A stretch of DNA of 64,000 nt, from sequence record MK250027.1. One strand, written 5' to 3'. Positions within the stretch are counted from its first letter, which is position 1, and each line of letters opens with the position of its first letter. Shown here one piece after another: positions 2,539 to 45,109 of this stretch. The notes below the pieces were generated by a model. The model had not been told where the DNA came from and did no database searches. It worked only from the letters and a program-made list of their open reading frames with translations. The translations under genes and the position numbers were made by a program.

Positions 2539-3075
2539 ATGAAAGAGCAAAGATATACAATAAAGGATGCAGAGGAAATGTCTTATAATGAAGATATTAT
2601 CTGTTTTTGGAAACCATACGGAATAAATGAAATAGGTCCACATGTATTGTGTCAGTGGTATAAGTCAATATTTAGTGATGATAAGAATACTTATTCTTGC
2701 ACTGAACAATATATGATGTATCAGAAAGCTATTTTGTTTGGCGATGATGAAATTGCAATGAAAATTCTTCAAGAAAAACGTCCAGATCAAATGAAGAAAT
2801 ACGGAAGACTTATTAAGAATTTCGATGAAAAAGTTTGGAATGAAAATAAGTTTATGATTGTATATAATGGTAATTATCTTAAGTTCACGCAAAATAAGAA
2901 ACTTAAGGATTATCTTAAATCTACAGGAAATTCTATATTGGTAGAAGCATCTCCATATGATGCTGTATGGGGAGTAAAAATGTCAATGGATAATGACGAT
3001 ATTTTATATCCAGAAAAGTGGAATGGACAGAATTTATTAGGATTTGCACTGATGCAAGTAAGAGATGATATTTAA
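2539..3075 (+). CDS. NADAR (YbiA-like) family hydrolase
   Basis: Motifs EQYMMYQKAILFGD, LVEASPYDAVWG, GQNLLGFALMQVR. Confidence 0.92.
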   Translation: MKEQRYTIKDAEEMSYNEDIICFWKPYGINEIGPHVLCQWYKSIFSDDKNTYSCTEQYMMYQKAILFGDDEIAMKILQEKRPDQMKKYGRLIKNFDEKVWNENKFMIVYNGNYLKFTQNKKLKDYLKSTGNSILVEASPYDAVWGVKMSMDNDDILYPEKWNGQNLLGFALMQVRDDI

Positions 3076-10845: not shown

Positions 10846-11466
10846 ATGAAAGTTTATATAGATGTTTACTATTATACAGATAATAAAACTAGTAAAGAGT
10901 ATGCTCATACAGTAGCTGGTCTTTTTAATGATTATTCAGATTTGGATTTTGAAAAAGTAATAGTAACAAGAACAGATAATATAGCAGAATATGAACAGGG
11001 TAATTTTTATAAGAGAGAATTACCTCCTATTATTGATGTATTAAAAGAAATTAAAAAACAAGGATATATACTTGATACAATAATAGTTGATGGATATGTA
11101 NNNNNNNNNNNNNNNNNNNNNNNNNNNNNNNNNNNNNNNNNNNNGTCAAGACTAAAAGATTATTTATTGGATAATAATATAGATATACCTATTATTGGAA
11201 TTGCAAAGCATCCTTATAAATGGATGTATAAAGATACGTATTTTAAATATGATAACAATATAATAAAATATGAAACTTTTGATAAATCTTTGAAATTACC
11301 AAAGAAAAATATGTATATAACATTTTCTTTAGAATATAAAGATGATGTTAAATTACAAATAGTAAAGGAAATTTATGCAATGAAGAAAGTTCAACGTGAT
11401 GCTAAATTTAGTTTACTGTTTACAAAAATTGATCAAATAACAAAAGAGTATAAACATGATAGTTGA
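10846..11466 (+). CDS. nfi: Endonuclease V-like protein
   Basis: IDVYY, YEQGNFYKRELP, IIVDGYV, IIGIAK motifs; contains an N-run. Confidence 0.8.
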   Translation: MKVYIDVYYYTDNKTSKEYAHTVAGLFNDYSDLDFEKVIVTRTDNIAEYEQGNFYKRELPPIIDVLKEIKKQGYILDTIIVDGYVXXXXXXXXXXXXXXXSRLKDYLLDNNIDIPIIGIAKHPYKWMYKDTYFKYDNNIIKYETFDKSLKLPKKNMYITFSLEYKDDVKLQIVKEIYAMKKVQRDAKFSLLFTKIDQITKEYKHDS

Positions 11467-11920
11467 TTTTAAAACATTTATATATGCCGGTTTCTTTGTA
11501 TCAGATGATGATAAGTAGAAACTTGAAATTGCATTTTGTGAGAATGTAGAAAATGGTGCTTCATATCTACAAGATTGGAAAGTGTATATTGATCACNNNN
11601 NNNNNNNNNNNNNNNNNNNNNNNNNNNNNNNNNNNNNNNNNNNNNNTATCATTAATTATTTGAAGGATACTCCACCTGATACACATATGTATTTAACGGT
11701 AGATGGAATTGGTAGATATGAAAATGTATTTGCGTTTAGGATTAAGAAAACAGAAGTAGTATCTATGTTGATTAAGAATAAACAACCACATATTACATGT
11801 GTATTAAATCCTGATACAAATAAACCTGTTGATAGTAATAAGATTTGTAACTGGATTGATATTAATCCTATTAAGATAGATACAGTTTGTAAGATTTTTA
11901 ACAAGAAGAAAAAGAAATAA
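11456..11920 (+). CDS. 2H phosphoesterase (RNA-ligase/PDE-like); one in-frame TAG at 11516
   Basis: YAGFFV..., WKVYIDH[N-run], QPHITCV, KPVDSNKI.NW; N-terminus only obtained by reading TAG as Gln. Confidence 0.65.
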
Positions 11921-11922
11921 TT

Positions 11923-12645
11923 ATGAATACTTATGATTTTACAGATCCATTTGATTATGAAGAATATATGAAATTATTGAATAATTTCTTAGAACCATCA
12001 GTTAAAGAGAAAAATAATATTATATATAATTCTCATTTTACGCTACGACCTGTTGATACTGATACTTATAATAAGTTTAAGGAATATCTTGAATATGAAT
12101 ATGATAAGAATACTTGTTTTTTTATGCATATTTGTATTGATGGAAAAATTATAAATGATTCTGTTTATTTTTGTAGATTCGATTCTTATGATTATTTATA
12201 TTCAAAGATAAAGGATTATAATAAGAAGAAACATTATTTTGAATTTTTCACTAAATGTGATATAGCGTCATATACAAAAGAAGAAGTTGATAAGTATAAT
12301 GATGAATATGAGCGTTATCATTATAGAGGAAAAAAACGAAAGGTTGGTGAGAAATATTTAAAGAAAACAGATGTTATTGTTAATCTTAAATCAGGTAAAG
12401 AAGTATCGTTTATTGAAATACCTAAGTATAATAGAGGATATATTGTATATGAGAAATATTATTCACCAAATGGTGAATATAAAATTATTTCTTTAGAAAC
12501 AGGTAGAATAATTGAATATGATTATGGTGATAAAATTGAAACAGATAATCATGTAATATTTAAAGCGAAACGTAATGATTATAATGATCCTGTTAAAGCT
12601 ATAGTTCTAGATAAAAGTACAGGTGATTTTATTTATATTGATTAA
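11923..12645 (+). CDS. Hypothetical protein
   Basis: 240-aa ORF. Confidence 0.7.
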   Translation: MNTYDFTDPFDYEEYMKLLNNFLEPSVKEKNNIIYNSHFTLRPVDTDTYNKFKEYLEYEYDKNTCFFMHICIDGKIINDSVYFCRFDSYDYLYSKIKDYNKKKHYFEFFTKCDIASYTKEEVDKYNDEYERYHYRGKKRKVGEKYLKKTDVIVNLKSGKEVSFIEIPKYNRGYIVYEKYYSPNGEYKIISLETGRIIEYDYGDKIETDNHVIFKAKRNDYNDPVKAIVLDKSTGDFIYID

Positions 12646-12659
12646 ATTATAATAAAATT

Positions 12660-13148
12660 ATGTTAGTATTTCATGGTAGTTCACAACGAATAGATTATAT
12701 TGATATAGATAAATGTCATTTAGGTTGGCATTGCGGAAATATTTGTCAAGCAATAGATATTACAGATCCTAAAAGACATAATGATAAATTTGATTGGGAA
12801 ACTACATATATTTATGTATCTGATATATATCCAACACATGATAATACAATTTATATAGAAGATAAATTTAGATATTCTGATAATTTTTTAGATGATATTA
12901 TTACAGAACTATCAAATAAGTTAATATCAGAATTTCCTAATATATCATTAAATGATTTATATACATGTGAGTCTGAAAGAGATGTTAGAGACTTCTTACT
13001 TTATAATAATATAAAATATATTGCATATGAAAATTTAATAGAAAGTAGAGGATTNNNNNNNNNNNNNNNNNNNNNNGGTGAAATAGATAATGTACAAGAA
13101 TATACATTTTATGATTTTTTAATAATAAATTTAAATGCTAAAATTTAA
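12660..13148 (+). CDS. Hypothetical protein, possibly ADP-ribosyltransferase-like fold
   Basis: N-terminal VFHGS..GWHCG..QA and late IAYENxxE pattern; contains an N-run. Confidence 0.4.
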   Translation: MLVFHGSSQRIDYIDIDKCHLGWHCGNICQAIDITDPKRHNDKFDWETTYIYVSDIYPTHDNTIYIEDKFRYSDNFLDDIITELSNKLISEFPNISLNDLYTCESERDVRDFLLYNNIKYIAYENLIESRGXXXXXXXXGEIDNVQEYTFYDFLIINLNAKI

Positions 13149-13365
13149 GAAACAACATAAACATTTCTTTATAACTAAATATAAATCTATGTTTTGTATA
13201 GAAGATATTATAAAAATAGCTCGTTATGATGATAATTGTAGAGGAGGAAAAATATATAAAGCAAGATTAAATGGAATAAATGAAGATTATGAGTTTAATA
13301 TTGATCCAGATGATCAAGAACGATTAGTAAAATATATTAAGCAGTTAGGATATGATAAAATTTAA
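13135..13365 (+). CDS. Hypothetical protein
   Basis: Packed ORF. Confidence 0.6.
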   Translation: MLKFKKQHKHFFITKYKSMFCIEDIIKIARYDDNCRGGKIYKARLNGINEDYEFNIDPDDQERLVKYIKQLGYDKI

Positions 13366-14014
13366 TTTTGATAATAAAGGAGTTTCTATTAGTTCTAAAG
13401 ATATGAAGGAATTTCAGGAGAATGTAATGACAGTAGAAGATATTGTTAATAGACTTTTGAAGTTTTATTCAAAGGATAAGACATATATGGGTGAACAGAA
13501 ACAAATGCTTNNNNNNNNNNNNNNNNNNNNNNNNNNNNNNNNNNNNNNNNNNNNNNNNNNNNNNNNNNNNNNNNNNNNNNNNNNNNNNNNNNNAGCAGAT
13601 AATAAATTGCATAAACTTATTATGTGGCGTGATGATAACGGTCTTCATAATTTTGCAATGTGGCTTAAGAATGAAGATATGCTTGGTGGTAAGCTTGTAA
13701 AAATTTATCCAGAAGATGATGATATTTTTACAAAGAATCAAATGGAAGGTGCAATGTATCTTGCAGAAATTAATAAGATACCATATTTTGAAGGATGTGA
13801 TGAACATGCGGATAATTATGTATATCAAACAAAGTTGAAGGAACTTGATGATGAAATTGAAAATATCAAGAATCAACGAACATCTTGTAAGAACGAAATG
13901 AAATCTATTCAAGATAGATATGCTGAACTTCTTACATATTATGCAAAGATGAAAGTAAAGCAAGTTAAATTGCAAATTGAAAGAGAAACATTAGTTAATA
14001 AACATAAGAAGTAA
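13352..14014 (+). CDS. Hypothetical protein with C-terminal coiled coil
   Basis: ORF in frame across an N-run. Confidence 0.6.
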   Translation: MIKFNFDNKGVSISSKDMKEFQENVMTVEDIVNRLLKFYSKDKTYMGEQKQMLXXXXXXXXXXXXXXXXXXXXXXXXXXXXADNKLHKLIMWRDDNGLHNFAMWLKNEDMLGGKLVKIYPEDDDIFTKNQMEGAMYLAEINKIPYFEGCDEHADNYVYQTKLKELDDEIENIKNQRTSCKNEMKSIQDRYAELLTYYAKMKVKQVKLQIERETLVNKHKK

Positions 14015-14213
14015 TAGAANNNNNNNNNNNNNNNNNNNNNNNNNNNNNNNNNNNNNNNNNNNNNNNNNNNNNNNNNNNNNNNNNNNNNNNNNNNNNNNNN
14101 NNNNNNNNNNNNNNNNNNNNNNNNNNNNNNNNNNNNNNNNNNNNNNNNNNNNNNNNNNNNNNNNNNNNNNNNNNNNNNNNNNNNNNNNNNNNNNNNNNNN
14201 NNNNNNNNNNNNN

Positions 14214-14946
14214 NGTATTAACTATTATTCGTATTCCTAACAGAAGTAGAACAGAAGATAATCAAGATCCTGTATATACTACAATACCGGTTGGTATGAT
14301 GATAAAGGATAATATTTTTATTACAGCATATTATGGACAGAATAATGTTATATCAAATTTCATTAATTGGAGTAATCAGAAAAAGATTAATGATAGAATA
14401 GGATATAATCTTTATATAAGTATATTTCTTGAATCTAATTTTTGGTTTCTTAAATATCTTAAACAAATTCATATTCAGNNNNNNNNNNNNNNNNNNNNNN
14501 NNNNNNNNNNNNNNNNNNNNNNNNNNNNNNNNNNNNNNNNNNNNNNNNNNNNNNNNNNNNNNNNNNNNNNNNNNNNNNNNNNNNNNNNNNNNNNNNNNNN
14601 NNNNNNNNNNNNNNNNNNNNNNNNNNNNNNNNNNNNNNNNNNNNNNNNNNNNNNNNNNNNNNNNNNNNNNNNNNNNNNNNNNNNNNNNNNNNNNNNNNNN
14701 NNNNNNNNNNNNNNNNNNNNNNNNNNNNNNNNNNNNNNNNNNNNNNNNNNNNNNNNNNNNNNNNNNNNNNNNNNNNNNNNNNNNNNNNNNNNNNNNNNNN
14801 NNNNNNNAGCAGCACTTATTCCAGGATTTTATGGAATGAATTTAAATAATGGAATAGAAACATGGGCATATGGATTTCCTTTTGCTGTTTGTTTAACAGG
14901 AATATGTGCAGGAATATCTTATTTTTTATGTAAACTATTTAAGTAA
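14214..14946 (+). CDS. corA: CorA-family Mg2+/divalent cation transporter (partial; start and middle in N-runs)
   Basis: TIIRIP...YTTIPVGMMIKDNIFIT before the gap and PGFYGMN plus a TM helix after it, in the same frame. Confidence 0.75.
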
Positions 14947-14960
14947 ATATAAATATAAAT

Positions 14961-15161
14961 ATGAGTATATGTTTTAGAAATATAGATAAATGTAAATATT
15001 CAAAAGAAGAAATAAAACTTCGTATTATTGAAAATCTTATAGAAAATAGGTTTAAAAATTACAGTAATAAAGAGTTGAAAGATTCTATGTATGGTACTAA
15101 TAATGTTTACCCAAGATTTAATGAAATTTATAATTGGATTTGTGAATATGTATTTGAATAA
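14961..15161 (+). CDS. Hypothetical protein
   Basis: 66-aa ORF. Confidence 0.5.
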   Translation: MSICFRNIDKCKYSKEEIKLRIIENLIENRFKNYSNKELKDSMYGTNNVYPRFNEIYNWICEYVFE

Positions 15162-15165
15162 TGAT

Positions 15166-15366
15166 ATGATACGATTTAAAAATAAAGATAATAATATAAA
15201 ACATGAATTAACAAATGAAGAGATAAATCTTAAAATTCATGAATTAGTATTAAAAACTATTACTGCAAAAAGAACTTATCTTTCTGATATATGTACAGAT
15301 ATGTCAAAAGAAGATGGATATTATAAAAAAATGGTATCTATTATAAAAGAACATATACATGATTAA
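15166..15366 (+). CDS. Hypothetical protein
   Basis: Short ORF following the previous stop. Confidence 0.45.
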   Translation: MIRFKNKDNNIKHELTNEEINLKIHELVLKTITAKRTYLSDICTDMSKEDGYYKKMVSIIKEHIHD

Positions 15367-15647
15367 GTTATTATATAAATTAAAAATAAACAAAATATTA
15401 AAATAAAAGATAATATTTAAATAATAAAATTAAATAAATAAAAGTATGTTGATTGGTTCATGTGTATTATCTNNNNNNNNNNNNNNNNNNNNNNNNNNNN
15501 NNNNNNNNNNNNNNNNNNNNNNNNNNNNNNNNNNNNNNNNNNNNNNNNNNNNNNNNNNNNNNNNNNNNNNNNNTATCGTCTATATTATTATTGGACGAAA
15601 GAGTGTAAAAGTTAATTATTAATTCACATTTAAATAATAATAGAAAA

Positions 15648-16133
15648 ATGGAAAATAATAAACAAGAGGTTAATGAGATTATTGAGAAGTATGATATTCT
15701 TATCAAAAATGCAATGAAGGCGCGTGAGAAAGAAAAACTTAATACTTATAAGTTGGTTAAGGCTCGTCTTCTTGAGTATAAAACAGGTGATAAGGATAAA
15801 AATGATAATTATCCAGTATTGGATGAAAAATCTGAAATGCAGATTCTTAATAAGATGGTAAAGGAACTTCAAGGTGATATTGAGATTCGACAGAAAACAA
15901 ATAGTCATTTGGATGAAGTTGAAGAATTTACACATCAGATGAACTATATTAAGGATNNNNNNNNNNNNNNNNNNNNNNNNNNNNNNNNNNNTTCAGTAAT
16001 TGATAAGTATATTTCTGATAATGGAAATTATTCTCAAAAAGAAATGGGTAAGGTTATCGGTTTTGTTCGTTCATCATTTAAAGCAGTTGATGGTGGAATG
16101 GTAGCAAAACTTGTTAAATCAAAGATGTCTTAA
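15648..16133 (+). CDS. GatB/YqeY domain protein
   Basis: AMKAREKEKL..., KEMGKVIG, VDGGMVAKLVK typical of YqeY. Confidence 0.8.
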   Translation: MENNKQEVNEIIEKYDILIKNAMKAREKEKLNTYKLVKARLLEYKTGDKDKNDNYPVLDEKSEMQILNKMVKELQGDIEIRQKTNSHLDEVEEFTHQMNYIKDXXXXXXXXXXXXSVIDKYISDNGNYSQKEMGKVIGFVRSSFKAVDGGMVAKLVKSKMS

Positions 16134-16153
16134 ATAATAACTAAATAAATTAT

Positions 16154-16194
16154 AAAGTGGGTATATTCATGTATATGAAATATATCCACTTTTT
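16154..16194 (+). terminator. Terminator at the boundary between TAG-free and TAG-recoded blocks
   Basis: aaagtgggtatatt/aatatatccacttt. Confidence 0.7.
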
Positions 16195-16239
16195 CTATAT
16201 TTAATAAAATAAATATTAAAAATATGTATATAATAAAGA

Positions 16240-16977
16240 ATGACTAGATCTGAATTTATTGAATGGTTAAAATCAGAAATAACAATGAGTAATACTATAA
16301 ATATTTCTTTATCGGACCGTGAATATGAAAGACTTGTAGATAGAGAACTAAGAATGGTTTATGAATTGGATAATGATAGCGTGCGTTATGATAAATATAT
16401 AATCCCACGAGATGTATTTTATTCTCAAGAATTTAGGAAAACTAGAACTATAAAATTTCCTGATTGCGTTTTATCTGTAGTTAAATTGGAAGAGATGAAA
16501 AGGAGAAATTATATGTATGGTGTGAACGACCCAGATCTATCATGGAACCGTATGTTTTAGACAGATATGTGGATGGGTCCGTAGATGGCGATGGACACTG
16601 TGATGTTTAGGACTATATAGTGGTCTAATTGGGATTAGTTAAAATAGTTTAATTTAGTTGATATAAAGCATAAGTGGAATAGACTTACACATTAGTTATT
16701 TGTGATGGGACATGATCCATATAATGATGTTTATTGTGAAGTAGCTGTAAAGGTAGATGAACAGGAATTATTTGAAGATCCTTGGGTAAGACAATGGATT
16801 GCAGCTAAATGTAAGTTATAGGTTGTGAAAAAATTAGGAACATTTACAGTGACTGCAATTGGAGGTGTAACTGTAAATACAGGAACATATTCAGAAGAAG
16901 CAAATAATGATATAAATGATTGTAAAGAATATTGGACTAATTTACGTCAAGCAGATTTTTTCGAAACAGGTTGGTAA
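16240..16977 (+). CDS. T4 gp13-like neck protein (TAG=Gln)
   Basis: Open to TAA 16975 when TAG is read through; C-terminal KLGTF..IGGVTVN...EEA resembles gp13. Confidence 0.6.
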
Positions 16978-17104
16978 TTAAAGAATTGGTTATTAATAAG
17001 TTAAGATATGTTAATAGAGAATGTAATATTTTGTAATTTATGAATATTGCATTCTCTATTTTTATAAAATAAATAATGTAAAATTAAGAATAATTTTAGT
17101 TAAT

Positions 17105-18904
17105 ATGGGATATAAAAGATATAGTGAAAATACATTTACAGTTGATAATAGTGGTGCTACATCAGGAACTTTAAAAAAAACTTCTGGAAAATATATATAT
17201 TTTGGTATAGCTAAACCAAAAGGAAGCAATACTTTTAGGAATTTAGATTAGTCAGATTTGGATAAAGGTATATAGAGTGATACATCTGGTTGTTCTGCAA
17301 CAATAACATATACATCTAGCAAATCAAATGTTGGACTAATAAATTATACATTATCATAGAATACATCTGGAGCAGATAGAACTATTATATTTAAATATAA
17401 TAATATAGATTTATTTTATATATTATAGAAATATAGTGGTGATAATTTAATATATGAAACTGGTAATATATATGTATGCGTAATTCCGAGCATATCTAAC
17501 TCTCCAGATAAAATATATTTATTTGTTGATCTCAATAATTATAGGCCTACACAAGCACAATTGGATTCAAATAATTATAAAACAATGTCCGGTACAAAGG
17601 GTTTTAATACAACATATTCTGGAAGTGGTTTAATGTTATATTTTTCCAATGTAACTTTACCTGAAAATAAAACAATAAAAGAATTAAAAGATGATGGGAT
17701 ATTAACAGTAGTTAGAGAAAATATTTCATTTACTTCAAATTCTCAGTATAATAAGTAGATACCATATCATATGGAAAAAGTAAATACACCAAGTGCATTA
17801 AATGGTTATTATGATTTTACTGATGAATCAAAAAAAAGTAATGCATTTGATAAAGAATATTCAATGTATAATGCTGCAGGAGGTGTGTATGGTAGTATAA
17901 GATTTAATATATTTAATAGTCATTATTATTATGGTATATATAAATTAAATATAAATGATTATTTTATTTATATAATAAAATTTAATACTTCAAAAACAAG
18001 TGGAATTATTGATAATATAGGCGTTATTGGTGATTATAAATATGGTATATCTTAGACATCTGGTGGTGCTTGGTATACTATTCTGTCTGGTGATATATTA
18101 TGGTATTATTCAAATAATATAACAATAAAAAATATAAATACATCTATTAAAACATTAATATCCAATGGAATATTAGAACCAGTTGAGTCTACAAATACAT
18201 AGTTAAATAATTCAAATTATATATTATATAAAGTTCCTTATAGTTATAATGGAGCAGTAGATAGCGCTGTTACAAGTGTTTCATTTAATGATGATATTTA
18301 TATATATGAAAATTCATCAGAAATAACACAAGATTCTGTAAAATGTATTACAATGGTAAATTTTAGTAATTTATCTACATCATATCATATGGGAATATAT
18401 AAATATAATGCGAACAATGATAAAGTAAAATATACTATATCTTTATATAGTATAGAAGCCTCATCTATTACAAGTGAAACAGGGTATAAATAGTATATAT
18501 TTAATATGGAAAATAATGCATGGACTGATTTTACAGAAACTAGTTCAACATCAAAATATATGAATTTACAATTTAAAAAAGAACCATCAAGTTCAACATG
18601 TTCATATTTACTATGGGAAAAATCTAATACATTATTATATGATAGTTTTAAACCAGAAACGATAAGTAATTTAAAAACAAAATATAATTTAAAATCAAAA
18701 AGTAATGCAGAAGATATAAATCATTTATATGGTCAATATGTATTGAATGTAACAGGTGATACAATATGTAAAAAAGGCAAATCAAGCAGATATACTTGGA
18801 ATGCAACATTAACTAATTATATATTTGAATTAAAAGATGGAGAAACTGAATTTAAAAAGAAATCAAACATAACATTAGTTGGTGCATTTACAATAGAAGT
18901 TTAA
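17105..18904 (+). CDS. Putative virion/tail-associated protein with a BACON-like domain (TAG=Gln)
   Basis: Joins three track ORFs in one frame; SDTSGCSAT...NTSGADRTIIFKYNN..LF.IIQ. Confidence 0.7.
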
Positions 18905-19025
18905 TAATTATTTTAATTCGTTATTCAAATCTAATTTTGCGTAACGAATTTTTTATTTATGTATATTAATACATAGGATTTTATATATTTGTATAGATAC
19001 TGAAATAATAAATTTCAATATTTTT

Positions 19026-19718
19026 ATGACAACATATAAAAAATATACATCATCAATAACTGCAAATATTTCTTCATCTGCTCATACAAATGAAGAATTT
19101 AAATGGTATGTAGGTTCTTCAACATAGTCTACTGTTTATTTTGGAATGGAAGATAATGATAATAACTTTACAGGTAAATTATCAAATTCATCATATACAT
19201 TATCATCAGATGTATCCGGATGTTCTGCAACAGTATCAAATATAGATTCAACAAAAACTGCAGGAATAATATATTTAAATATACCAGCAAATACAAGTAC
19301 AACTAACAGAACAATCGTATTTAAATATAATACAGTTTCATTATTTACAATAATATAGTCAGGTAGCACAACTTCTGTAACTACTATAATATTTAGTATT
19401 GGTGGTTTTTAGGGAAATAATAAAGTTATAATTCACTGGAGTGGAACTAATTTTTCATCAGATGGAACTACTGTAAGTTGTAGAATTAATGATAGTACGC
19501 CGAATTCAGATGGTTCATATAATGCACGATTTACTATAACTATACCGTCTGGATATGGACAATCATATGCAACATGTGATGGTGGATATGTATATAAAGG
19601 ACATAAGTATTCTTTAGTTGAACCATGTACACCATCATCATATGGTAATTATAGATTTAAATGTAATACTACAGAAGTTACTTATACAGATCGTATGGTG
19701 GGTACTATAACTACGTAA
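19026..19718 (+). CDS. Putative virion protein with a paralogous BACON-like domain (TAG=Gln)
   Basis: SDVSGCSAT...NTSTTNRTIVFKYNTVSLFTIIQ. Confidence 0.7.
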
Positions 19719-19777
19719 AGTGAGATATTGTATTTTCTAATTGAGTGTAGATATAAAAATTATTTTTTAATATTTTT

Positions 19778-20584
19778 ATGTCAACATATAATAAATATGG
19801 TTATGAAAATCCAACATTTATAGGATATACAAATTAGACAAATTCTATTATTAAAACAGATGATGGAAAATAGGTTTATTTAGGATTTGAAGATATTGAT
19901 AAATTATTTAAAGGAAAAAATAATATATCTGATGAAATTTAGTTATATGACAATGATTATTCAGATAAAGTAAATGGATTAACGGTAACTGCATATCCTT
20001 CAGATAATACAAATACTGGTTCTGATTTAAGATATACTTCAACATCTTATAAACATAAGTATCAAGTTGCATATAAAGGTATAAAATTATTTTAGCTTGA
20101 TATTAGAGAAAATAATATAATATTATTTGAAATAACTGTTAACTTTTTAATAGAAACACGATTGTTAGACGATACATCTGATAATTATGATGTATATGTT
20201 TCTACAGTCTCTCTTACATTATCATAGTTATTACCATTTAAATTAAATGTTTGTGTTAATTTAGTATATGATTCAACATTAGATGATGGTTCAATTGATT
20301 TAACTGAATGTATAGAAGGTTATGATTGGTATTTTGATGTAAATACTACTGTTGGAAAAGCAATGAATAACAATAATAATCGACCTAATATAATATTAAA
20401 TAAAGGTAATGGTCAATATGGGTTTCATAGTATAGAATTTTTAGATAGTACTAGTAATGATTATCGATTTGTTGGACCAGGTTCTACTAATAACCATACA
20501 AATGAGTATGCAGAAATAATATATGAAAATAAAATATATAGATGTAGTAATGTTAATTTTTCTCCTAATGATATGATATATTAA
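19778..20584 (+). CDS. Putative virion protein (TAG=Gln)
   Basis: Continuous frame with TAGs only; ends TAA. Confidence 0.7.
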
Positions 20585-20635
20585 ATATAAATTATCATGA
20601 ATAAATAATAAAAAGTTATTTTTGATATTATTTAT

Positions 20636-21049
20636 ATGAAAAGACATTCTATTCCATTAAATATACTTGATGAATACGCAAAAACAATTTCATCAAAATA
20701 GGTAAAAATGCTTTATGAATCAAAATGCAATAAGAAATNNNNNNNNNNNNNNNNNNNNNATATGAAATATCAAAATGATAAAAGTTATTCTATATATTTA
20801 AATGATTTCACTCTTGATGAAGCACATTCATCAGTAGACAAAGCATTAGTACGTTATGTAAATAAATATAAACTTCAATTCAACAAGGTATCAGATGGAG
20901 TTTACTTCTATACACCACTTGAAGAGAATTATATTTCTTTACTTAAAAATCTTGTTCAAGATGGATTTGACATTGATCTCTTAAAGGAAAATGTAGATTC
21001 ACAAAAAGCAACAGTTTATTTAGAAAAATTAAAGTTAAATAAGAAATGA
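20636..21049 (+). CDS. Hypothetical late protein (TAG=Gln)
   Basis: Upstream ATG in frame through one TAG; contains an N-run. Confidence 0.6.
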
Positions 21050-21753
21050 TTAAGATAAGAAGACGTAAACCTATTTTCGAGGACGATTAGAATACACAGC
21101 AATAGCAACAACCTGCAACAAATACTTAGCAACCAGCTACATAGGCGCCAGCTGCACAACCATAGTAGAATACAACTGCTCCATAGCAACCAACAAATAA
21201 TCAACAACCTAATCAAACGCAAGATTAGAATAATAATCAACAACAATAGGATTAGAATAATCAACAACAATAGCAACAACCAAATCCTAATGCATAGAAA
21301 GTATAGGATACATTGAAACAAATGGAGAATACATGGTGGATGATTTCTGTTAACCTTCCTGATGAAATTCAAAAAAATATTCCTGATTTTAAACAAGGTA
21401 ATCAACAAGCAGATCCGGCAATTAAAGCATGGAATGATTTCAAACAAAATCCATCAGAAGATACATTTAAAAATTTCTTAAATGGATTTAAATCATTTGG
21501 CGGATTATCTGGTGATTAGAATGCTAATAATAATCAACAACCATAGCAGAATAATGGAACAACAACTCAATAGCAACCTGCTAATAATACACAGCAACCT
21601 AATCAACAACCATAGCAGAATGTTAATGCAGGATTAAAAGCCGCATATTCATTCAGAAAGAATTTAATGGAAAATTTAGCTATTGCAAAATAGAAACAAT
21701 ATTATAATACAGTTTGTGAAGATTATTTTGATAAAAATGAATTTACATTATAA
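21046..21753 (+). CDS. Gln/Asn-rich low-complexity protein (TAG=Gln)
   Basis: TAG interspersed with CAA/CAG in poly-Q tracts; ATGA overlap with the previous gene. Confidence 0.85.
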
Positions 21754-21758
21754 TTATT

Positions 21759-22520
21759 ATGAAGAAATATAAATATGTTTACAACACAAAAACTGGACAT
21801 TTTATAAAGAAACTTAATGAGGATGATTCAAATGTAAAAACCGATACAAATCAAGATAATAATAACTCTAATAATTCAACGGATAGTAAAGATGATGCTT
21901 CTACTGGAAATACATCTTTTAAATCTGTTGAGTCTGATGAAACAATTCAAGACCTTACTGCGAAAGCATAGGAAAATGAAAATAAGTTTCAACAAGACTT
22001 AAATACGCAATAGAAATTATTAGACGCAGCCAAAGCTACTGCATCAAATAAAACACCAGCAGGACCATATGATCCTGTTATGACAGATTAGAATGTTTTG
22101 AATATCATGAAGAAAATAAATGATATGACAAAACAACATGCAATAGATTAGGCAAATTTTCAGGATTAGAAATTAGCTTAGCTTTAGAAATTATCACAAA
22201 CAAATGAATCATATTATAAAATTCCAGAGAAATATAAATGGTTGAATGAATCAAATATTCACACAGCGAAAATCTATATGGGTAATCTTATTAAACCTGA
22301 AGAAGATGCTCCATTAAAAGGCATGGCTGATTTTAAGCGAGCGTTTAAAGATACTGACTTACTTTATGGAAAAGATAAGAACGGATACTTCGTTGTTTGT
22401 GTGGATTAGGAAGATTTTAATACTTTATATGACACTCTTGAAGAAAATTCTTATGTTAGAGACGAAATAATTGATACAGTTATGCCTTAGTTATTTGACA
22501 GACATGAAATGATCCAATAA
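21759..22520 (+). CDS. Hypothetical late protein, possible internal head protein (TAG=Gln)
   Basis: Open to TAA 22518; KKLNED and WLNES motifs. Confidence 0.75.
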
Positions 22521-22544
22521 AAATAATTACATTAATATAAATTT

Positions 22545-23324
22545 ATGCAATATATAAGAACCACAGAAGATTTAGATCAAGATTTAATTTTATATGGAAC
22601 ATATCTGTTATATAATCCAACGACAAATGTAACAAAGTTAAGAGTTTCAGAAAAACCTATATATATAGGATTAGATGATTTCGTTGAAGTATTAAATAGT
22701 CTTAAGAAGATTGCATCTGATTTAAAAATAGTTCCTAATGAATATCCTGTATATCAATATATTCGTAGTAACAAATATAATGGTTCGACATGGAATATTG
22801 TTGCAGGTGTGGTTAATTCAGAGTTTAAAAAGATTGCAGATAAAGAATACTCAATGATTCCTAATATATAGAAGTTAATTCTTCCTAATAAGGAATATAT
22901 TGATTTCCCACATTTTGCCGCTGTTTTCAATGGTCTCATTAATAAGCATGGTGACCTTTGTGGATATTGTGGTGATATTGTTCAGTTCGCAAAAGATATA
23001 AAAGAAAATCCAATGGTTGAATTTCCATCTGGACATTTTGGAATCGAAGATTTAAGAACAGATATTGACGCTTATAATATATTTAAGATGAATAATAGCG
23101 ATACGATAAATTCATTTAAATCTTATTATGAAAATATGTCTGATAAGAAACGATTTTCATTATTTTTAGAAGATCATCCAAATATACTTGATAGCTTTAA
23201 TAATTCAACCGATAATTTTTATCTTAATATATTAAAGCAAACAACAGATAAAGATTTAACAGATGAACATATAAAATTAGCATGTTAGAAAATGCAATTA
23301 TATTTAGAAAATAATAAAGGTTGA
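22545..23324 (+). CDS. Hypothetical protein (TAG=Gln)
   Basis: Joins track ORFs; DFPHFAAVFNG...GDLCGYCGD...EDLRTDID motif. Confidence 0.7.
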
Positions 23325-23349
23325 GAATAAACAAAATTCTCAACCTTTT
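23316..23349. terminator. Bidirectional terminator
   Basis: aaaggttgagaat/attctcaacctttt between convergent genes. Confidence 0.8.
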
Positions 23350-23355
23350 CTTTTA

Positions 23356-24003
23356 TTATAAGCTTTCTATATATTTCTTTATTCCTTCTACATGAATATC
23401 AATTATAGTATTCCTGCCTTCGTTACTCAATAGCCAGGAAGCATCTTCCTTGTTGTCCATAAACATATTCTCTGTTAAACATGCTGGACAATTTGTTTTA
23501 CTTAATACATAGTAATTTGCTTCTTGATCAGGATCACCATCTGAATAATCAGGTCGAAGTTTCTTTCCTAATGGTGTTAGTTTTTCTTCTGCTACTTTAT
23601 ATAATGCAGTTGCTAATTTATCACCTTCTGTTTGACCTTTACTTGTATATACAGACCATCCTTGTGCTTTATACCACTCACCATTTCCAGCTGCATTTAC
23701 ATGAATAGAAATAAAAATAGCTTTATTTCCAGATTTCTTTTCTTCTGCATATTTTGCATTAGCACGTTGAACGCGAAGACTTAAATCATGAGACTGACTT
23801 GTAATCTCTTCAACTTCAGGATGAACAATATAGCATCTATAACCTTCAGAAATTAATTTATTATAAACTTCATATCCTATTGCGCGAACATATGCATATT
23901 CTTTTAATTTAGTCTATGCATTATCAAACACCGGACTGGATTTGCCAGGTGTATTTTGTCCGTGACCCATATCAAGCATTACTAAAACTTTACTCTTTTC
24001 CAT
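23356..24003 (-). CDS. N-acetylmuramoyl-L-alanine amidase (Amidase_3), putative endolysin; single in-frame TAG at codon 30
   Basis: LDMGHG..PGKSSP, RVQRAN, ISIHVNA, LTENMF; missing from the ORF track. Confidence 0.9.
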
Positions 24004-24005
24004 AA

Positions 24006-25469
24006 TCAATAACTTTTATCATATAATTTAAATGTATCTACTGCTAATTCTTTCAAACAATTATTACTTAAACATACTCCATCATTTCCAGCCGTAGGCG
24101 CTAAGAAATTCTTCCATTTGTCTGAAATACTCTTATTTACCTTAATTGTTTTCCTATTGCGTTTACCTTGTTTAATTTCATCTTTACATCTCTATAAAGT
24201 AGAATTAAGATTATCATATATTTTTTGAATATCTTCCTTATCCAATATATAAACGATATAATCAATATTACTAGTTCCTATATATCTTGGAAATAATACA
24301 TATTTTATATTATCATCTGATAATATATCCATTCCGCCTTTACGAGATATAGGAATTCTGAAATTATCTTCACTTGTACTCTTACGTTCAACAACAGCAA
24401 GCTCAAATTTTGCAGGATAATTTGGAACATTTGTTCTATTAGCAATATAAAAATCTCTACTACCAATACGCCTAGATGGTTCTCTTAATGATGCATACCC
24501 AAATTTATTTTTTAATACACCCTATATTCTCTATTTTAAATGAGAAGACGGATTATTATGCCCATAATCATATCTATCTTCATTAAGTGATTTCTTCACG
24601 CTAACTGCAATGGATTCAATTAAAGATTTATATAGTTCTTTTTTATTATTCATATTTTCAGTTAACTATAATTTTGATAACATATTTATTATTCGTTTAT
24701 CAATGACAGCATACTAATCTATATCATCTACCATATCTGCATTTTCTATAATAGCTTTAAAAAATTCGTTGTTAACCTTATTATACATATAAAATGGAAC
24801 ATTATCTATATAACATGTACTTGTATTAAACAATACATATTTAAATTGCTTAATTAACTATTTAAATAATTCAACCAAACATTTTTCGTTTTCAAACTAA
24901 CATTGTCTAATATAAACATTATTTGCTAATTGACTTAATCCCTAATTTACAATCTAAGGAAAATTCTAAACAAATTTTAAAGTTAATTTATCATCTGTAC
25001 TAGTTATCTATCTTTTATTTGATGTCTATATAACAAATCTTTTTCTTTTATCTTTTAATTCAAATATGATCTTATCTGTTATCATATCATATTCATTAAA
25101 CAACATATTAGCAAATGGTATCGCACATGCATCATCATCTACAATTATATCATTATTTTCATACTATGCAGGATAAACCTATATGTAATTCAAATGTGTA
25201 AATGAATCATTAAAACTGAATAAGCATGACAACATATTATATGTATACGGTAATATATCACCTTCACGTGTTTTATACTAACCTGAACAATGCTAAGGTT
25301 CATCATCTAATATTAATAAATAATGATCCTATACAACAGGAAACTAATATCTTTCTGTACCTAATTTCTTTATTAGTAACTATCCTATTTCTATAGGTAC
25401 TGTTGTTCTCATTATAGAATTTGTTAATTCAATATTATTACCAAAATCTATGTCATTAAATAAACCCAT
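24006..25469 (-). CDS. Hypothetical late protein (TAG=Gln), possible internal start at 24653
   Basis: 488 codons with only TAG interruptions; internal MNNKKELYKSLIESIAVSVKKSLNE. Confidence 0.7.
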
Positions 25470-25500
25470 TAAATATAAAATAACTATTTATTGTATTTAT

Positions 25501-25842
25501 TTAAAATGGTAATTCTTCACTAGGATCTTGCTGATAGAATGGAAGACAATTATTTCCGTAATGTTTCTTGAAATACTTTTTCTGAATCTTTTTTTCTTCA
25601 CGTGATTGTCTCATTGATTCCCTCGATACTGTGAAACTTGGACAATTTTCACAAATACCATACATATATTCATGTCTCTCGTTCTCTATATCATCATATG
25701 TTCTATTAGTAAAATGAGGTTGACGAGCACAATGGAACCATGAAATAAACATAGGATATGGATCATCAGTTACCATATCATCATAAGATTTATCATGCGT
25801 ACACTGACACATACAATATTTCTTTCTTAATCTACTTTTCAT
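25501..25842 (-). CDS. Cys-rich hypothetical protein
   Basis: 113-aa ORF. Confidence 0.65.
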   Translation of the reverse strand: MKSRLRKKYCMCQCTHDKSYDDMVTDDPYPMFISWFHCARQPHFTNRTYDDIENERHEYMYGICENCPSFTVSRESMRQSREEKKIQKKYFKKHYGNNCLPFYQQDPSEELPF

Positions 25843-25957
25843 ATTTGTTAAAATTAAAATATTATTATATAGTTTATATAATAATGTATAACTAATGTTT
25901 ACTAAACTTTATTTTTATAATTAAATACAATAATTATAAAATATTTTATTTATAGTT

Positions 25958-27094
25958 ATGACAGATATAGAATGTTTAGAATTTTATAATAAAAATATTA
26001 AATACAAACGATTTCATAAGAATTATTTAATTAAGATATATCCTGAATTTATGAAATATATACAAAATAGATTTTCGAATTTATCTGGTGATGAATCAGT
26101 TAAAGAATTAATATATAGAATAAAATATAAATTAGTAGAAAAACCTAAATGTCCTATTTGTGGTAAATTACTTAAATTTATTAATATTAAAAATAAATAC
26201 CAAACATTTTGTTCAAGAAAATGTCAATTTTCTGATGAAGGACAATAGATACAATCTCAACTTAGATTTAATACAAAATTAAAGCGCTATGGAAATGGCA
26301 CGTTCACAAATAGTGATAAAGCAAAGANNNNNNNNNNNNNNNNNNNNNNAGTTACAAATGTCGGAGCTGTAAAAGAAGTAAGAGATAAAGTAAAAGAAAC
26401 ATGTTTAAAGAAATTTGGTGTAGATAATCCCATTAAAAATAAAAATATAAAAGATAAAGTTAAGCAAACATGTTTAATGAAATTTGGTAGTGAAACGCCA
26501 TTTGAATCAAATGATATATAGAAGAAAGTAAAACAAACATGTATAGAAAAGTATGGTGTAAAAAATATAATGCAACTTGAAGAAACGAAAGAAAAAATTA
26601 AGCAAACATGTTTAATGAAATATGGTGTAGAATATCCTATGCAATATAAAGATATAATGTTAAAATCTTTTAAAACATGCTGGCAATTAAAAAAAGGAAA
26701 TAGAAGNNNNNNNNNNNNNNNNNNNNNNNNNNNNNNNNNNNNTACATTTATAGATAAAGATACAAAAAGACAATATTATTCAGAATTATATCCCTTCCAT
26801 TGTGACTTTTATTTACCAAAATATGATCTATATATAGAATATAATGGAACATGGACACATGGGAAACATCCATATAACAAAGATAATGAAGATGATATAG
26901 AATTACTCAATAAATGGAAAATTAAAGCAGAAAATAGTACATTTTATAAAAATGCAATTAAAAATTGGACTGTTAGAGATCCATTAAAAAGGCAAACAGC
27001 AAAATATAATAATTTAAATTATTTAGAAATATTTTATAATGATGATTATAAAACATATATATCTAATTATATAAATAGAATAAATGCTAAATAA
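25958..27094 (+). CDS. Putative free-standing homing endonuclease (Zn finger, TCxxKYG repeats, PD-(D/E)XK-like C-terminus; TAG=Gln)
   Basis: CPICG..FCSRKC; repeated KQTCLxKYGV; YPFHCDFYLPKYDLYIEYNGTWTHG; two N-runs. Confidence 0.7.
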
Positions 27095-42588: not shown

Positions 42589-42915
42589 ATGAAAGCAAAT
42601 TTTGTAACGGTTATCAAGAAGAGAGCAATCAAGAATGTACCAGCATTTCAAGATTTCTCAATGAAACAGATTAAGGTTATTAGTAATTCACCTAATTATC
42701 CAAATTCTGTAACTTTGTCTATGGACATTTATTGTGATAATGTTGATGGTTATATTTTTAATAATGCATCTACAAATGAACAATATGCATTGACATCTGT
42801 TCAACTTAGTGACGCATTACGTAAGATGATTAGTAATAAAAAGTGTTATAAGCCTAACAGTAAGGAAGATTTACTTAGACTTACATTTGATACTATTGAA
42901 TCTTTTAAATTTTAA
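42589..42915 (+). CDS. Hypothetical protein
   Basis: 108-aa ORF behind the promoter. Confidence 0.7.
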   Translation: MKANFVTVIKKRAIKNVPAFQDFSMKQIKVISNSPNYPNSVTLSMDIYCDNVDGYIFNNASTNEQYALTSVQLSDALRKMISNKKCYKPNSKEDLLRLTFDTIESFKF

Positions 42916-42925
42916 TTAATTTAAA

Positions 42926-42956
42926 TGTAGACAATAATACATTATTAATATATAAT
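42926..42956 (+). promoter_or_regulatory. Sigma70-like promoter TAGACA-N17-TATAAT
   Basis: TGTAGACAAT motif with exact 17-bp spacing, recurring at 43014 and 47125. Confidence 0.65.
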
Positions 42957-43013
42957 ATATATAAATTATTTGATTAAACAAATTAATGAAAAATTAAAAA
43001 TAATTTATTAAAA

Positions 43014-43044
43014 TGTAGACAATATCAAATAAATAACATATAAA
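43014..43044 (+). promoter_or_regulatory. Sigma70-like promoter TAGACA-N17-TATAAA upstream of the tRNA
   Basis: Second copy of the motif. Confidence 0.65.
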
Positions 43045-43164
43045 TAATATAATAATTAAAAACAAACGCTTATTTGATTTTCGTAGCGTTATGGATAAGT
43101 TGATAGAATTCAGAAATTCCTTTTAAGACGAATACACATGGAATGGTCCATTGGTGGAATTGGT

Positions 43165-43473
43165 AAAGTGTTTGCCTGCATTAATTTGTAGAATCCATCA
43201 AATTCAGTATCAGTTAGGATTAAATTTTAAATATTAGTAGTTGCTATTGACGAAAATATTGACAATAATTAATTTATTGTTACCTGAGGAATAAGTGTTT
43301 ATTTAATAAACAACGAAGAAGCTGACTAAGAAAACCTAAGGTCTTCATAAGAAGATAGCTTGGTAATACTGAGCCAAGATAATTTTTAATTATAAGGTGC
43401 AGAGACTATACGGTGGGAACTAATAGCAAGTTAAGATATAGTCCAAACTTTATAGAAATATAAAGAGTTTTTG
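43165..43473 (+). ncRNA. Group I intron in the tRNA D-loop (309 nt, no ORF)
   Basis: 5' exon ends in U and intron ends in G; P1 GGU-AAA/UUU-GCC; P10 AGACAC/GUGUUU; GCAGAGACUA and AAGAUAUAGUCC core elements. Confidence 0.85.
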
Positions 43474-43488
43474 AGACACGAGGGACTT

Positions 43489-43836
43489 AAAAAATTTGAG
43501 TGCTCTATTGAGAAATCATAGAAGTAGAATCTCCCTAACGAAACGGAAGCCTAATTATTGGTGACAATAATGGTGGTGACGAACTCACTAAGTTGTTATA
43601 GAACGTTAATCTATATTAAATGTAAATTGAAGTGTTACAGCATAAATAGCGAAGAGACTATAGAGGAGATACCTAAGTTAAAGTACACGAAGAATAATCA
43701 ATTAGATTATCACTATATATGAAGAGTATATAGTTTTATAATAAGGAATGCGCATTACTTTAATATGGTAGTAAAATAGTCCAGACTACAACATCTTAAT
43801 AATTAAGATGGCTTGTATTAAAGCAAGAGTAGTAAG
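43489..43836 (+). ncRNA. Group I intron in the anticodon (U^AA; 348 nt, no ORF)
   Basis: P1 ACUU/GAGU with U.G at the splice site; GAAGAGACUA and AAUAGUCC core; terminal G; same site as the cyanobacterial trnL intron. Confidence 0.85.
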
Positions 43837-43893
43837 AAAATCCCTTGGGCAGAAATGCCCGTGCCGGTTCGAATCCGGCATGGACCACATATA

Positions 43894-43933
43894 AAAGTCT
43901 GATAATCAATAGGTTAGATTATCAGACTTTTAT
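43894..43933 (+). terminator. Terminator after the tRNA
   Basis: aaaagtctgataatc/gattatcagactttt. Confidence 0.8.
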
Positions 43934-43972
43934 TTTTATATAGTATATAAAGTATAATTAATATTTTTAATA

Positions 43973-45109
43973 ATGATTACAATTACAGAACAATATATAA
44001 AAGAGTACCAAAAGAAATTAGATGATATTTCTAAATCATTTGATTTAGAGAAACAACATATTATAGTTGAAGAATTATCAATTAAAGTTTCTGCACCAGA
44101 TTTTTGGGATGATTTTGAAAGTGCGACATCAATCACAAAAGAACTTAATACAGCAAAAGAAAAGATAGATGATGTTGAACATATGAAAATGCTTATTGAT
44201 GAGTTATCAACTGCATTAATGTATTATAAGGAATTTGAAGGTAAAGATGAAGAAGAATATGTAAATCTAGCGAATTCTGAATTAATTAGTGAATTCAGTA
44301 AATTTGAGGATAAGTATAGATTTGTTGATCCTACAGATTCATTAGGAGCTGTATTAGACATTAATGCAGGTGCAGGAGGAACAGAAGCAAATGATTGGGC
44401 AAATATGTTATTCCGTATGTATGAGATGTGGGCAAAATCAAATAATTATAAGTTTAATGTTTTATATTATTCAGAAGGGGATAAAGTAGGTATTAAAAAT
44501 GTATCTATTGAAATTACTGGTAATAATGCGTATGGAACATTAAAAGGTGAAACCGGTGTTCATAGAATGGTAAGGGTTTCACCATATAATGCACAAGGTA
44601 AACGTATGACTAGTTTTGCTGCAGTTTCTGTTGTGCCTTTAGTAGATAATTCTATCAAGGTTGAAATTGACGATTCTAAATTAACAATAGATACATTTAG
44701 ATCTTCTGGTGCTGGTGGTCAAAATGTAAATAAGGTAGAATCTGGTGTACGTGTAAATTATATGTATACAGATCCAGATACAGGTGAAACAGAAAAAATT
44801 CAAGTTGCAAATACAGAAACAAGAGATCAACCAAAGAATAAAGAAAGAGCAATGCAAATTCTTAAATCTATTCTTTATAAGAAAGCATTGGATAAACAAT
44901 TAGCTAAGAAAAAAGAAATAGAAGATGCAAAACTTAAAAATGAATGGGGTGCACAAATTAGATCTTATGTATTTGATGATAAGCGAGTAAAAGATCATCG
45001 TACAGGTTATCAAACAACTGATGTTGATTCTGTTATGAATGGAAATATAAATGGTTTTATAGAATCATATAATAATTGGATTATTGAGCAAGAAAATAAT
45101 AGACTTTAA
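43973..45109 (+). CDS. prfB: Peptide chain release factor 2
   Basis: GAGGTEANDW, VRVSPY (SPF-type anticodon motif), GAGGQNVNK, WGAQIRSYV; single uninterrupted ORF. Confidence 0.93.
   Translation: MITITEQYIKEYQKKLDDISKSFDLEKQHIIVEELSIKVSAPDFWDDFESATSITKELNTAKEKIDDVEHMKMLIDELSTALMYYKEFEGKDEEEYVNLANSELISEFSKFEDKYRFVDPTDSLGAVLDINAGAGGTEANDWANMLFRMYEMWAKSNNYKFNVLYYSEGDKVGIKNVSIEITGNNAYGTLKGETGVHRMVRVSPYNAQGKRMTSFAAVSVVPLVDNSIKVEIDDSKLTIDTFRSSGAGGQNVNKVESGVRVNYMYTDPDTGETEKIQVANTETRDQPKNKERAMQILKSILYKKALDKQLAKKKEIEDAKLKNEWGAQIRSYVFDDKRVKDHRTGYQTTDVDSVMNGNINGFIESYNNWIIEQENNRL

Follow-up and report, generated by a model that had tools for sequence, protein, structure and literature searches.

The group I intron of cyanobacterial and plastid tRNA-Leu(UAA) genes lies between U34 and A35 of the anticodon loop (PMC4033280); this intron, of subgroup IC3, is ORF-less and builds its P1 on the anticodon-loop CUU. 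Small self-splicing group I introns with short P1 helices also sit in the anticodon loop of tRNA-Ile, tRNA-Arg and tRNA-fMet genes of proteobacteria and cyanobacteria. Archaeal tRNA genes can hold several introns at non-canonical positions, including the D-loop and T-loop, with very short internal exons between them, but those introns are short, of the bulge-helix-bulge type, and removed by a protein endonuclease. In phages, group I introns interrupt protein genes, such as nrdD of Fnu1, dnaE of phage G, the tape-measure gene of Staphylococcus phage 6ec and the primase gene of crAss-like phages, and most of these carry or adjoin endonuclease genes; a survey of crAss-like phages reports group I introns in core protein genes, including primase, but not in tRNAs. 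For the Lak phages, 'enigmatic' tRNA introns were reported with tRNAscan in eukaryote mode (Devoto et al. 2019, PMC6784885). The Lak papers list only short anticodon-loop inserts, in tRNA-Tyr, Phe, Gly and Thr (the example shown is 93 nt) with only tRNA-Tyr listed for Lak-B, and mention neither tRNA-Leu nor group I.

Here we analysed a 64,000-nt stretch of record MK250027.1 (the window), which is Prevotella phage Lak-B, and in which a tRNA-Leu(UAA) gene is split by two group I introns, one at the classic anticodon site and one in the D-loop; their splicing is inferred from sequence comparison. Our literature searches found no report of a group I intron in a tRNA D-loop or of two group I introns in one tRNA gene, although papers outside the collection searched cannot be excluded. 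Intron 2 shares with the cyanobacterial and plastid intron the gene, the insertion point, the lack of an ORF and the use of the anticodon-loop CUU for P1; its host is a phage, it has long P5, P6, P8 and P9 extensions, and the Rfam model that covers those introns does not match it; on present evidence the resemblance is one of site and not of demonstrated descent. Intron 1, not intron 2, carries motifs recalling IC3 introns, which is a lead only. With the archaeal genes the locus shares more than one intron per tRNA gene, non-canonical positions and a very short internal exon, whereas the Lak introns are 280-350 nt long and of ribozyme type, with P1, P10, a P3-P7 pseudoknot and a terminal G.

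A tRNA-Leu(UAA) gene in three exons

The stretch 43100-43950 is 99.8-100% identical to nine Lak-B genomes and 92% identical to Lak-C1. Lak phages are about 540-550 kb and 26% G+C and read TAG as glutamine (PMC6784885); the long ORFs of the window hold 202 in-frame TAG codons. The three exons (Table 1) join into an 86-nt class II molecule called tRNA-Leu(taa) by ARAGORN, with a 7-bp acceptor stem, a 3-bp D stem, G18G19, anticodon UAA, a long variable arm, a TTCGAAT T-loop and discriminator A. The intact gene was missed by ARAGORN, by Rfam at gathering thresholds and by the Rfam tRNA model run over the whole Lak-B4 genome. Both inserts follow a U and end in G, and the longest stop-free runs within them are 63 and 55 codons even when TAG is read as sense, so neither contains an endonuclease ORF of its own. 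All the sequence statements of the preliminary description hold, namely the three exons, the two insertion points, the P1 and P10 elements sharing the 15-nt exon without overlap, the absence of ORFs, the failure of tRNA scanners, the prevalence of TTA and the neighbouring RF2 gene.

Table 1 Features of the tRNA-Leu(UAA) locus (positions in the window)
Feature	Position (strand)	Description	Support
Upstream anchor	43050-43132 (+)	Conserved sequence shared by the three haplotypes	89-100% identical in 53 RF2-anchored loci, whatever lies downstream
Exon 1	43145-43164 (+)	20 nt; acceptor 5' strand, U8-G9, D-stem 5' strand, D-loop up to GGU	ARAGORN call on joined exons; intronless alleles
Intron 1	43165-43473 (+)	309 nt, D-loop, no ORF	Rfam Intron_gpI match, below the gathering score, over 43291-43465; absent from syntenic intronless alleles
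Intron 1 P1	43162-43176 (+)	GGU^AAA (43162-43167) with UUUGCC (43171-43176); U43164.G43174 wobble at the 5' splice site	Read directly from the sequence
Intron 1 P10 guide	43168-43173 (+)	GUGUUU, pairs with exon 2 AGACAC (43474-43479)	Six standard pairs; G43168A in 6 alleles removes only the terminal pair
Intron 1 P3 5' strand, J3/4, P4 5' strand	43194-43209 (+)	P3 UCCAUC (43194-43199) with GGUGGG (43412-43417); J3/4 AAA (43200-43202); P4 UUCAGUA (43203-43209) with UACUGAG (43367-43373)	P3 variants keep pairing; P4 covaries in the subfamily
Intron 1 P4a and peripheral domain	43210-43325 (+)	UCAGU (43210-43214) with GCUGA (43321-43325), closing the 106-nt domain 43215-43320	Stem strands conserved in relatives in Fnu1 nrdD, phage G dnaE and an Enterocloster phage
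Intron 1 P5, P4 3' strand, P6/P6a	43334-43398 (+)	P5 hairpin 43334-43364; P4 3' strand 43367-43373; P6/P6a 43373-43398	Motifs GAAAACCUAAGG and CUGAGCCAAG shared with the Rfam consensus
Intron 1 catalytic core	43404-43473 (+)	P7 GACUAUA (43404-43410) with UAUAGUC (43437-43443); P3 3' strand 43412-43417; P8 43418-43432; P9.0 and P9 with GAAA loop 43445-43470; terminal G 43473	P7-P3-P8-P7' order gives the group I pseudoknot
Exon 2	43474-43488 (+)	15 nt; end of D-loop, D-stem 3' strand, G26, anticodon-stem 5' strand, C32 U33 U34; P10 of intron 1 at 43474-43479, P1 of intron 2 at 43485-43488	ARAGORN call; intronless alleles; continuous string in contig L112
Intron 2	43489-43836 (+)	348 nt, U34^A35, no ORF; P1 ACUU^AAA/UUUGAGU 43485-43491/43495-43501; P2 43504-43522; P3 43530-43534/43665-43669; weak P4 43544-43545/43580-43581; P5 43549-43577 with GUGA loop; P6 43592-43596/43637-43641; P7 43656-43661/43776-43781; P8 43670-43770; P9.0 43786-43789/43829-43832; P9 43792-43810; P9.1 43812-43827; terminal G 43836	Compensatory changes in 13-member alignment; in-silico splicing of relatives
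Exon 3	43837-43887 (+)	51 nt; A35 A36, rest of anticodon arm, long variable arm, T arm, acceptor 3' strand, discriminator A; no encoded CCA	ARAGORN call
Terminator-like hairpin	43891-43940 (+)	17-bp hairpin (43891-43933) followed by a U run, between the tRNA gene and RF2	Fold energy -20.3 kcal/mol, z -7.45
RF2 gene	43973-45109 (+)	Release factor 2, anchor for collecting alleles	Pfam PCRF 3.4e-48, RF-1 1.7e-30

Using RF2 as an anchor, the same interval was collected from IMG/VR, JGI/ENA metagenomes and Logan assemblies. Many Lak genomes carry an uninterrupted tRNA-Leu(taa) at the same place behind the same upstream sequence (for example positions 1568-1654 of contig L006), in which the D-loop reads GGAATAGGTAGACAC and the anticodon loop CTTAAAA; these are exactly the sequences obtained by joining the exons of the window at GGT^AGACAC and CTT^AAAA. 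A tRNA-Leu gene of an unrelated gut phage (contig L112) holds the continuous string GGTGGAATTGGTAGACACGAGGGACTT, which is letter for letter the end of exon 1 plus all of exon 2. The split structure itself is identical or near-identical in the nine curated Lak-B genomes, Lak-C1, IMG/VR contigs, ENA assemblies and Logan assemblies from many samples, with at least 19 distinct alleles from independent metagenomes; an assembly artefact or chimera, for which no evidence was found, is thus extremely improbable.

Architecture and relatives of the two introns

In a 901-nt search, the Rfam Intron_gpI model (RF00028) matched intron 1 at 40.5 bits (E 1e-8), against a gathering score of 50, and the match was lost to the speed filters when 21 kb or 64 kb was scanned; a search of the whole Lak-C1 and Lak-A2 records likewise returned nothing even though Lak-C1 holds intron 1, so that search is uninformative. 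By hand, a complete helix set including P2 could be drawn for intron 1, with the U.G wobble in P1, an internal guide that also forms P10, the P3/P7 pseudoknot and the terminal G. The alignment of Rfam itself places P3 and P4 at 43319-43329 with P4 deleted; this was rejected in favour of 43194-43209, which gives a canonical AAA J3/4 and a covarying P4. Plain minimum-free-energy folds of the introns did not recover the long-range helices. The core of intron 1 has relatives at 72-84% identity in many phages: in Fusobacterium phage Fnu1 the relative splits nrdD next to a GIY-YIG gene, and in Bacillus phage G it splits a dnaE-like gene next to a homing endonuclease gene. The motif CTGACTAAGARANYCTAMGGTC was found in at least 114 IMG/VR contigs. 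Both P4 strands could be located in 36 subfamily members, reading ACGGTA/TACCGT, ACAGTA/TACTGT, TCGGTA/TACCGA or, in Lak, TCAGTA/TACTGA; two columns change in step, and the three variable inner pairs stay standard in 35 of the 36. None of 110 other IMG/VR members is followed by a T-arm within 1.5 kb, so that, among the members sampled, the tRNA location is peculiar to Lak.

Intron 2 was not matched by RF00028, even when searched alone at E up to 10. This reflects the reach of the model for this family, because the same model also misses the family member that splits the primase gene of crAss-like phage cr116_1, and removing that member (positions 2510-3072 of the cr116_1 sequence, L003) fuses the two annotated primase fragments in frame into 342 aa. 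A core pattern found the family in about 20 further IMG/VR contigs. In 12 of these gut phage contigs, cutting at the predicted sites gives a tRNA-Leu(taa) by ARAGORN, split at the same U^AA site, and all 12 have an uninterrupted D-loop; one member sits at the same 34/35 position of a tRNA-Lys(UUU) gene, read by eye (contig L103), and four sit in primase genes at AAACTT^AAAATTTACC. A brute-force search for a split tRNA around the intron-2-like element of Lak-A2 gave no clean tRNA. RNAalifold on 13 family members recovered P2, P5 with a GUGA loop, P7, P8, P9.0, P9 and P9.1, with compensatory changes in 23 of 60 consensus pairs, located in P2, P5, P8, P9.0, P9 and P9.1. P3 (UCUCC/GGAGA) is invariant and crosses P7, giving the group I pseudoknot, whereas P4 is poorly defined in Lak-B; a UAACG/CGUUA helix was considered and dropped because Lak-C1 breaks it. 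Intron 2 is therefore a member of a common and, as far as we could find, undescribed family of phage tRNA-Leu(UAA) introns at the classic site, and is not special to this gene.

Taken together, the interpretation in the preliminary description is partly supported: its anatomical reading, a tRNA-Leu(UAA) gene split by two group I introns, is borne out by intronless syntenic alleles, covariation and relatives that split protein genes, whereas its statement that the introns are self-splicing goes beyond the data. The comparisons establish the exon and intron boundaries, the group I architecture, the homology to real introns and the conservation, while self-splicing, catalysis and splice order are inferred. 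The explanation that we favour, with good though not full confidence, is that this is the functional tRNA-Leu(UAA) gene of Lak-B/C-type megaphages, interrupted by two unrelated ORF-less group I introns. In this view, a precursor of roughly 740 nt would be transcribed and end at the terminator-like hairpin; each intron would fold on its own, intron 1 pairing its guide UUUGCC with the D-loop GGU and GUGUUU with AGACAC, and intron 2 pairing GAGU with the anticodon-loop ACUU; each would leave by the usual two guanosine-started transesterifications; and the 86-nt product would read UUA/UUG, the main Leu codons of this 26% G+C genome. The introns would best be read as selfish elements tolerated because they splice, intron 2 having come from a family circulating among tRNA-Leu(UAA) genes of gut Bacteroidota phages and intron 1 from a large subfamily that otherwise sits in phage protein genes, the two being inherited together in Lak phages as one cassette.

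Alternatively, intron 1 or both introns may no longer self-splice, leaving a pseudogene, or may need a phage or host factor for processing. The Rfam score of intron 1 below the gathering threshold, its P1 with only three exon pairs, the 116-nt insertion between its P4 and P5 and the weak P4 of intron 2 could point in this direction, and no RNA evidence for splicing is at hand: at least 12 runs labelled RNA, from about six studies, hold part of the locus, with shares of 0.15-0.21 of 1801 nt and 0.58-0.67 of 436 nt. An initial reading of these shares as excised intron 1 accumulating in RNA was rejected, because a count of shared 31-mers over 42600-44400 showed that Lak-C1-like two-intron alleles share 0.16-0.19 and 0.58-0.66 of the same words, and the shares cannot separate precursor RNA, excised intron and carried-over DNA. 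However, the 19 distinct alleles keep every core helix, P1, P10, the U.G pair and the terminal G; nine of the 16 variable sites of intron 1 lie in the peripheral domain, and the changes in P3 (C43195U, G43417A) and P8 (C43420U) keep pairing. The exons keep a perfect cloverleaf in diverged alleles and the haplotype is common. In addition, the only other tRNA-Leu found in Lak-B4 has anticodon AAG, so that the split gene is the only candidate phage decoder of UUA/UUG found, while TTA makes up 59% of Leu codons and 4.2% of all codons in the long ORFs of the window. A dead or protein-dependent intron is therefore considered unlikely.

If the introns are active, a D-loop intron here and a T-loop intron in the sister allele described below would show that the ribozyme can use other tRNA loops as P1 and P10 partners, where it would have to compete with tRNA folding. 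Two ribozymes separated by a 15-nt exon offer a compact natural system for studying splice order and exon definition. In practical terms, because tRNA scanners miss these genes, tRNA counts for Lak and crAss-like phages are too low, and the decoder of the commonest Leu codon appeared to be missing.

Three haplotypes between the upstream anchor and RF2

Of 58 loci classified, 53 had the upstream anchor. Among these, 26 carry the two-intron gene and no ORF before RF2; 17 carry an intronless tRNA-Leu followed by a 258-267-aa zinc-finger ORF of unknown function, for which Pfam, PHROGs and NCBIfam gave only zinc fingers; and 10 carry a tRNA-Leu with a 280-nt insert in the T-loop (GGGT^...G^TCGAG; positions 676-955 of contig L170, in the allele at 609-975), followed about 140 nt downstream by a free-standing 471-476-aa GIY-YIG/NUMOD3 homing endonuclease gene. 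Three truncated contigs look the same as the last group. Cutting L170 at 675/956 gives the same tRNA as the intronless allele. The T-loop insert has no Rfam match, but its relatives split the tape-measure gene of Staphylococcus phage 6ec next to an HNH gene and what appears to be a protein-coding gene of Lak-A1, and between L170 and Lak-A1, P3, P4, P7 and P8 all change in step; it is therefore a third group I intron, with a P7.1-like hairpin. No allele with only intron 1 or only intron 2, which would show each intron behaving on its own, was found among the 53 anchored loci. Identical RF2 proteins occur with different haplotypes, so the cassettes are exchanged among close relatives, and this context points to selfish-element dynamics. 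The three exchangeable haplotypes, one with an endonuclease gene next to an ORF-less intron, allow a direct test of how introns and homing endonucleases spread in uncultured gut phages.

The functions proposed in the preliminary description, that double splicing could time translation or shield the tRNA from anticodon nucleases and DNA-targeting defences, have no support beyond the circumstance that the gene sits next to RF2 in a recoded phage (TAG=Gln) that needs UUA decoding. Closely related Lak genomes with the same RF2 do without both introns, introns are removed before the tRNA acts so that the mature tRNA is as exposed as any other, and no defence or nuclease link was found; such a role is thus regarded as very doubtful.

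It is possible, although only tentatively so, that the introns persist because they break or replace the recognition sites of free-standing endonucleases competing for this locus, namely the GIY-YIG enzyme of the T-loop haplotype and perhaps the zinc-finger ORF of the intronless haplotype, in which case the two-intron cassette would be a resistant allele rather than a neutral passenger. On the one hand, the three mutually exclusive haplotypes between the same anchors, together with the identical RF2 proteins found with different haplotypes, imply frequent cassette exchange, and the layout of the T-loop haplotype resembles collaborative homing in the cyanophage psbA gene, in which an ORF-less intron acts with a neighbouring free-standing endonuclease gene. 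On the other hand, no cleavage site is known, the zinc-finger ORF has no nuclease match, the two-intron haplotype has no endonuclease gene of its own, and the pattern could equally come from ordinary recombination among co-infecting Lak strains. A broader version of this hypothesis, likewise speculative, is that the tRNA-Leu(UAA)-RF2 interval is an arena in which group I introns have colonised all three loops of one tRNA and are kept because they split or replace the target sites of competing endonucleases; the two-intron allele would then be a doubly protected version of an essential phage tRNA gene, and both non-anticodon introns would be active ribozymes, showing that group I introns can splice from within the D- and T-loops of a tRNA.

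The tRNA body of the two-intron alleles is at least as close to tRNA-Leu genes of unrelated, intron-bearing phages (73/86, 70/86) as to the intronless Lak allele (65/86), which fits co-conversion and is a further point for the endonuclease-contest hypothesis. Lak-B and Lak-C1 alleles differ at five of seven acceptor pairs, yet both keep full pairing. Together these observations fit acquisition with flanking exon sequence under continued selection for a working tRNA.

Sister haplotypes of the tRNA-Leu(UAA)–RF2 interval

A sister Lak allele was found in which the tRNA-Leu(UAA) gene is interrupted in the T-loop, after T54, by a 280-nt group I-like intron, and in which a free-standing GIY-YIG/NUMOD3 homing endonuclease gene lies between the tRNA gene and RF2. 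This arrangement was resolved on L170, a Logan contig from SRR24925847, and was also present in the loci L183-L186, L188, L190, L195, L199 and L204. By contrast, the intronless haplotypes (L166, L162 and 15 other loci) carry a 258-267-aa ORF, read with TAG=Gln, between tRNA-Leu and RF2; it has N-terminal C2HC/C2H2 zinc fingers and no other recognisable domain. Some Lak variants, represented by the loci L170 and L200, additionally have a resolvase-family gene inserted just after RF2, which is another sign that the interval is a hotspot for mobile DNA.

Other hosts of the intron 2 family

Elements of the family to which intron 2 (the anticodon-loop intron) belongs were encountered in several other gene contexts. 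In L103 (IMGVR_UViG_3300045988_175094), the same intron family interrupts a tRNA-Lys(UUU) gene between positions 34 and 35, with the upstream exon ending in ...ACACTT^ and the 3' exon starting with ^TTAATGTAT... In L003 (crAss-like phage cr116_1), the annotated "DNA primase" and "DNA primase/helicase" CDS are two halves of one gene, split by an intron-2-family element at AAACTT^AAAATTTACC; removal of the element gives a continuous 342-aa frame, and the site mimics the tRNA-Leu anticodon loop. The contigs L113, L114 and L120 also carry an element of the family in a primase gene at this site. In L002 (Lak-A2) and L102 (IMGVR_UViG_3300045988_166570), an intron-2-family element sits inside a tRNA-like gene that lacks a D arm. 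Joining at AAG^...^TTATTAAAA gives a 5-bp stem with the loop AUUAAAA (UAA); however, the splice site would then follow a G rather than a U. Some family members, namely the introns of the phage contigs L112, L105 and L116, carry a nested tRNA-like element inside the intron, in the P9 region (GGCGGAATTGGTATAC...GGGTTCGAGCCCC), for which ARAGORN reports an odd "tRNA-??? (gacg)".

Other features of the window and of Lak-B4

In the A+T-rich spacer upstream of the tRNA gene, the 13-mer AATGTAGACAATA occurs twice and may represent a promoter-type motif. Further oversized tRNA-like genes were detected in the Lak-B4 genome (MK250023.1), comprising two weak Rfam tRNA matches of 115 and 127 nt and an ARAGORN tRNA-Ser(gct) with a predicted 141-nt intron; these are probably the "enigmatic" Lak tRNA introns. 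Eleven runs of N, 938 bases in all, lie within one part of the window and were left as they are, and none of them is near the split tRNA-Leu(UAA) gene. The G+C content drops to 15% in 14001-16000, largely because of the masked stretches.

Positions of the additional features at sister loci, in related introns, in the window and in Lak-B4
Sequence	Position	Feature
L170 (Logan SRR24925847 contig)	609-2511	tRNA-Leu(UAA) gene with T-loop insert, and GIY-YIG/NUMOD3 gene
L166	1795-2598	Zinc-finger ORF of the intronless haplotype
L162	1750-2526	Zinc-finger ORF of the intronless haplotype
L170	3799-4398	Resolvase-family gene just after RF2
L200	3815-4414	Resolvase-family gene just after RF2
L002 (Lak-A2)	1390-1890	Intron-2-family element in a tRNA-like gene without a D arm
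L102 (IMGVR_UViG_3300045988_166570)		Intron-2-family element in a tRNA-like gene without a D arm
L103 (IMGVR_UViG_3300045988_175094)		Intron-2-family element in tRNA-Lys(UUU)
L105	intron positions 437-530	Nested tRNA-like element (example)
L003 (crAss-like phage cr116_1)	2510-3072	Intron-2-family element in the primase gene
Window	42923-42935	13-mer, first copy
Window	43012-43024	13-mer, second copy
Window	11101-26742	Runs of N
MK250023.1 (Lak-B4)	425513-425627	Weak Rfam tRNA match
MK250023.1 (Lak-B4)	425635-425761	Weak Rfam tRNA match
MK250023.1 (Lak-B4)	130755-130970	ARAGORN tRNA-Ser(gct) with predicted intron
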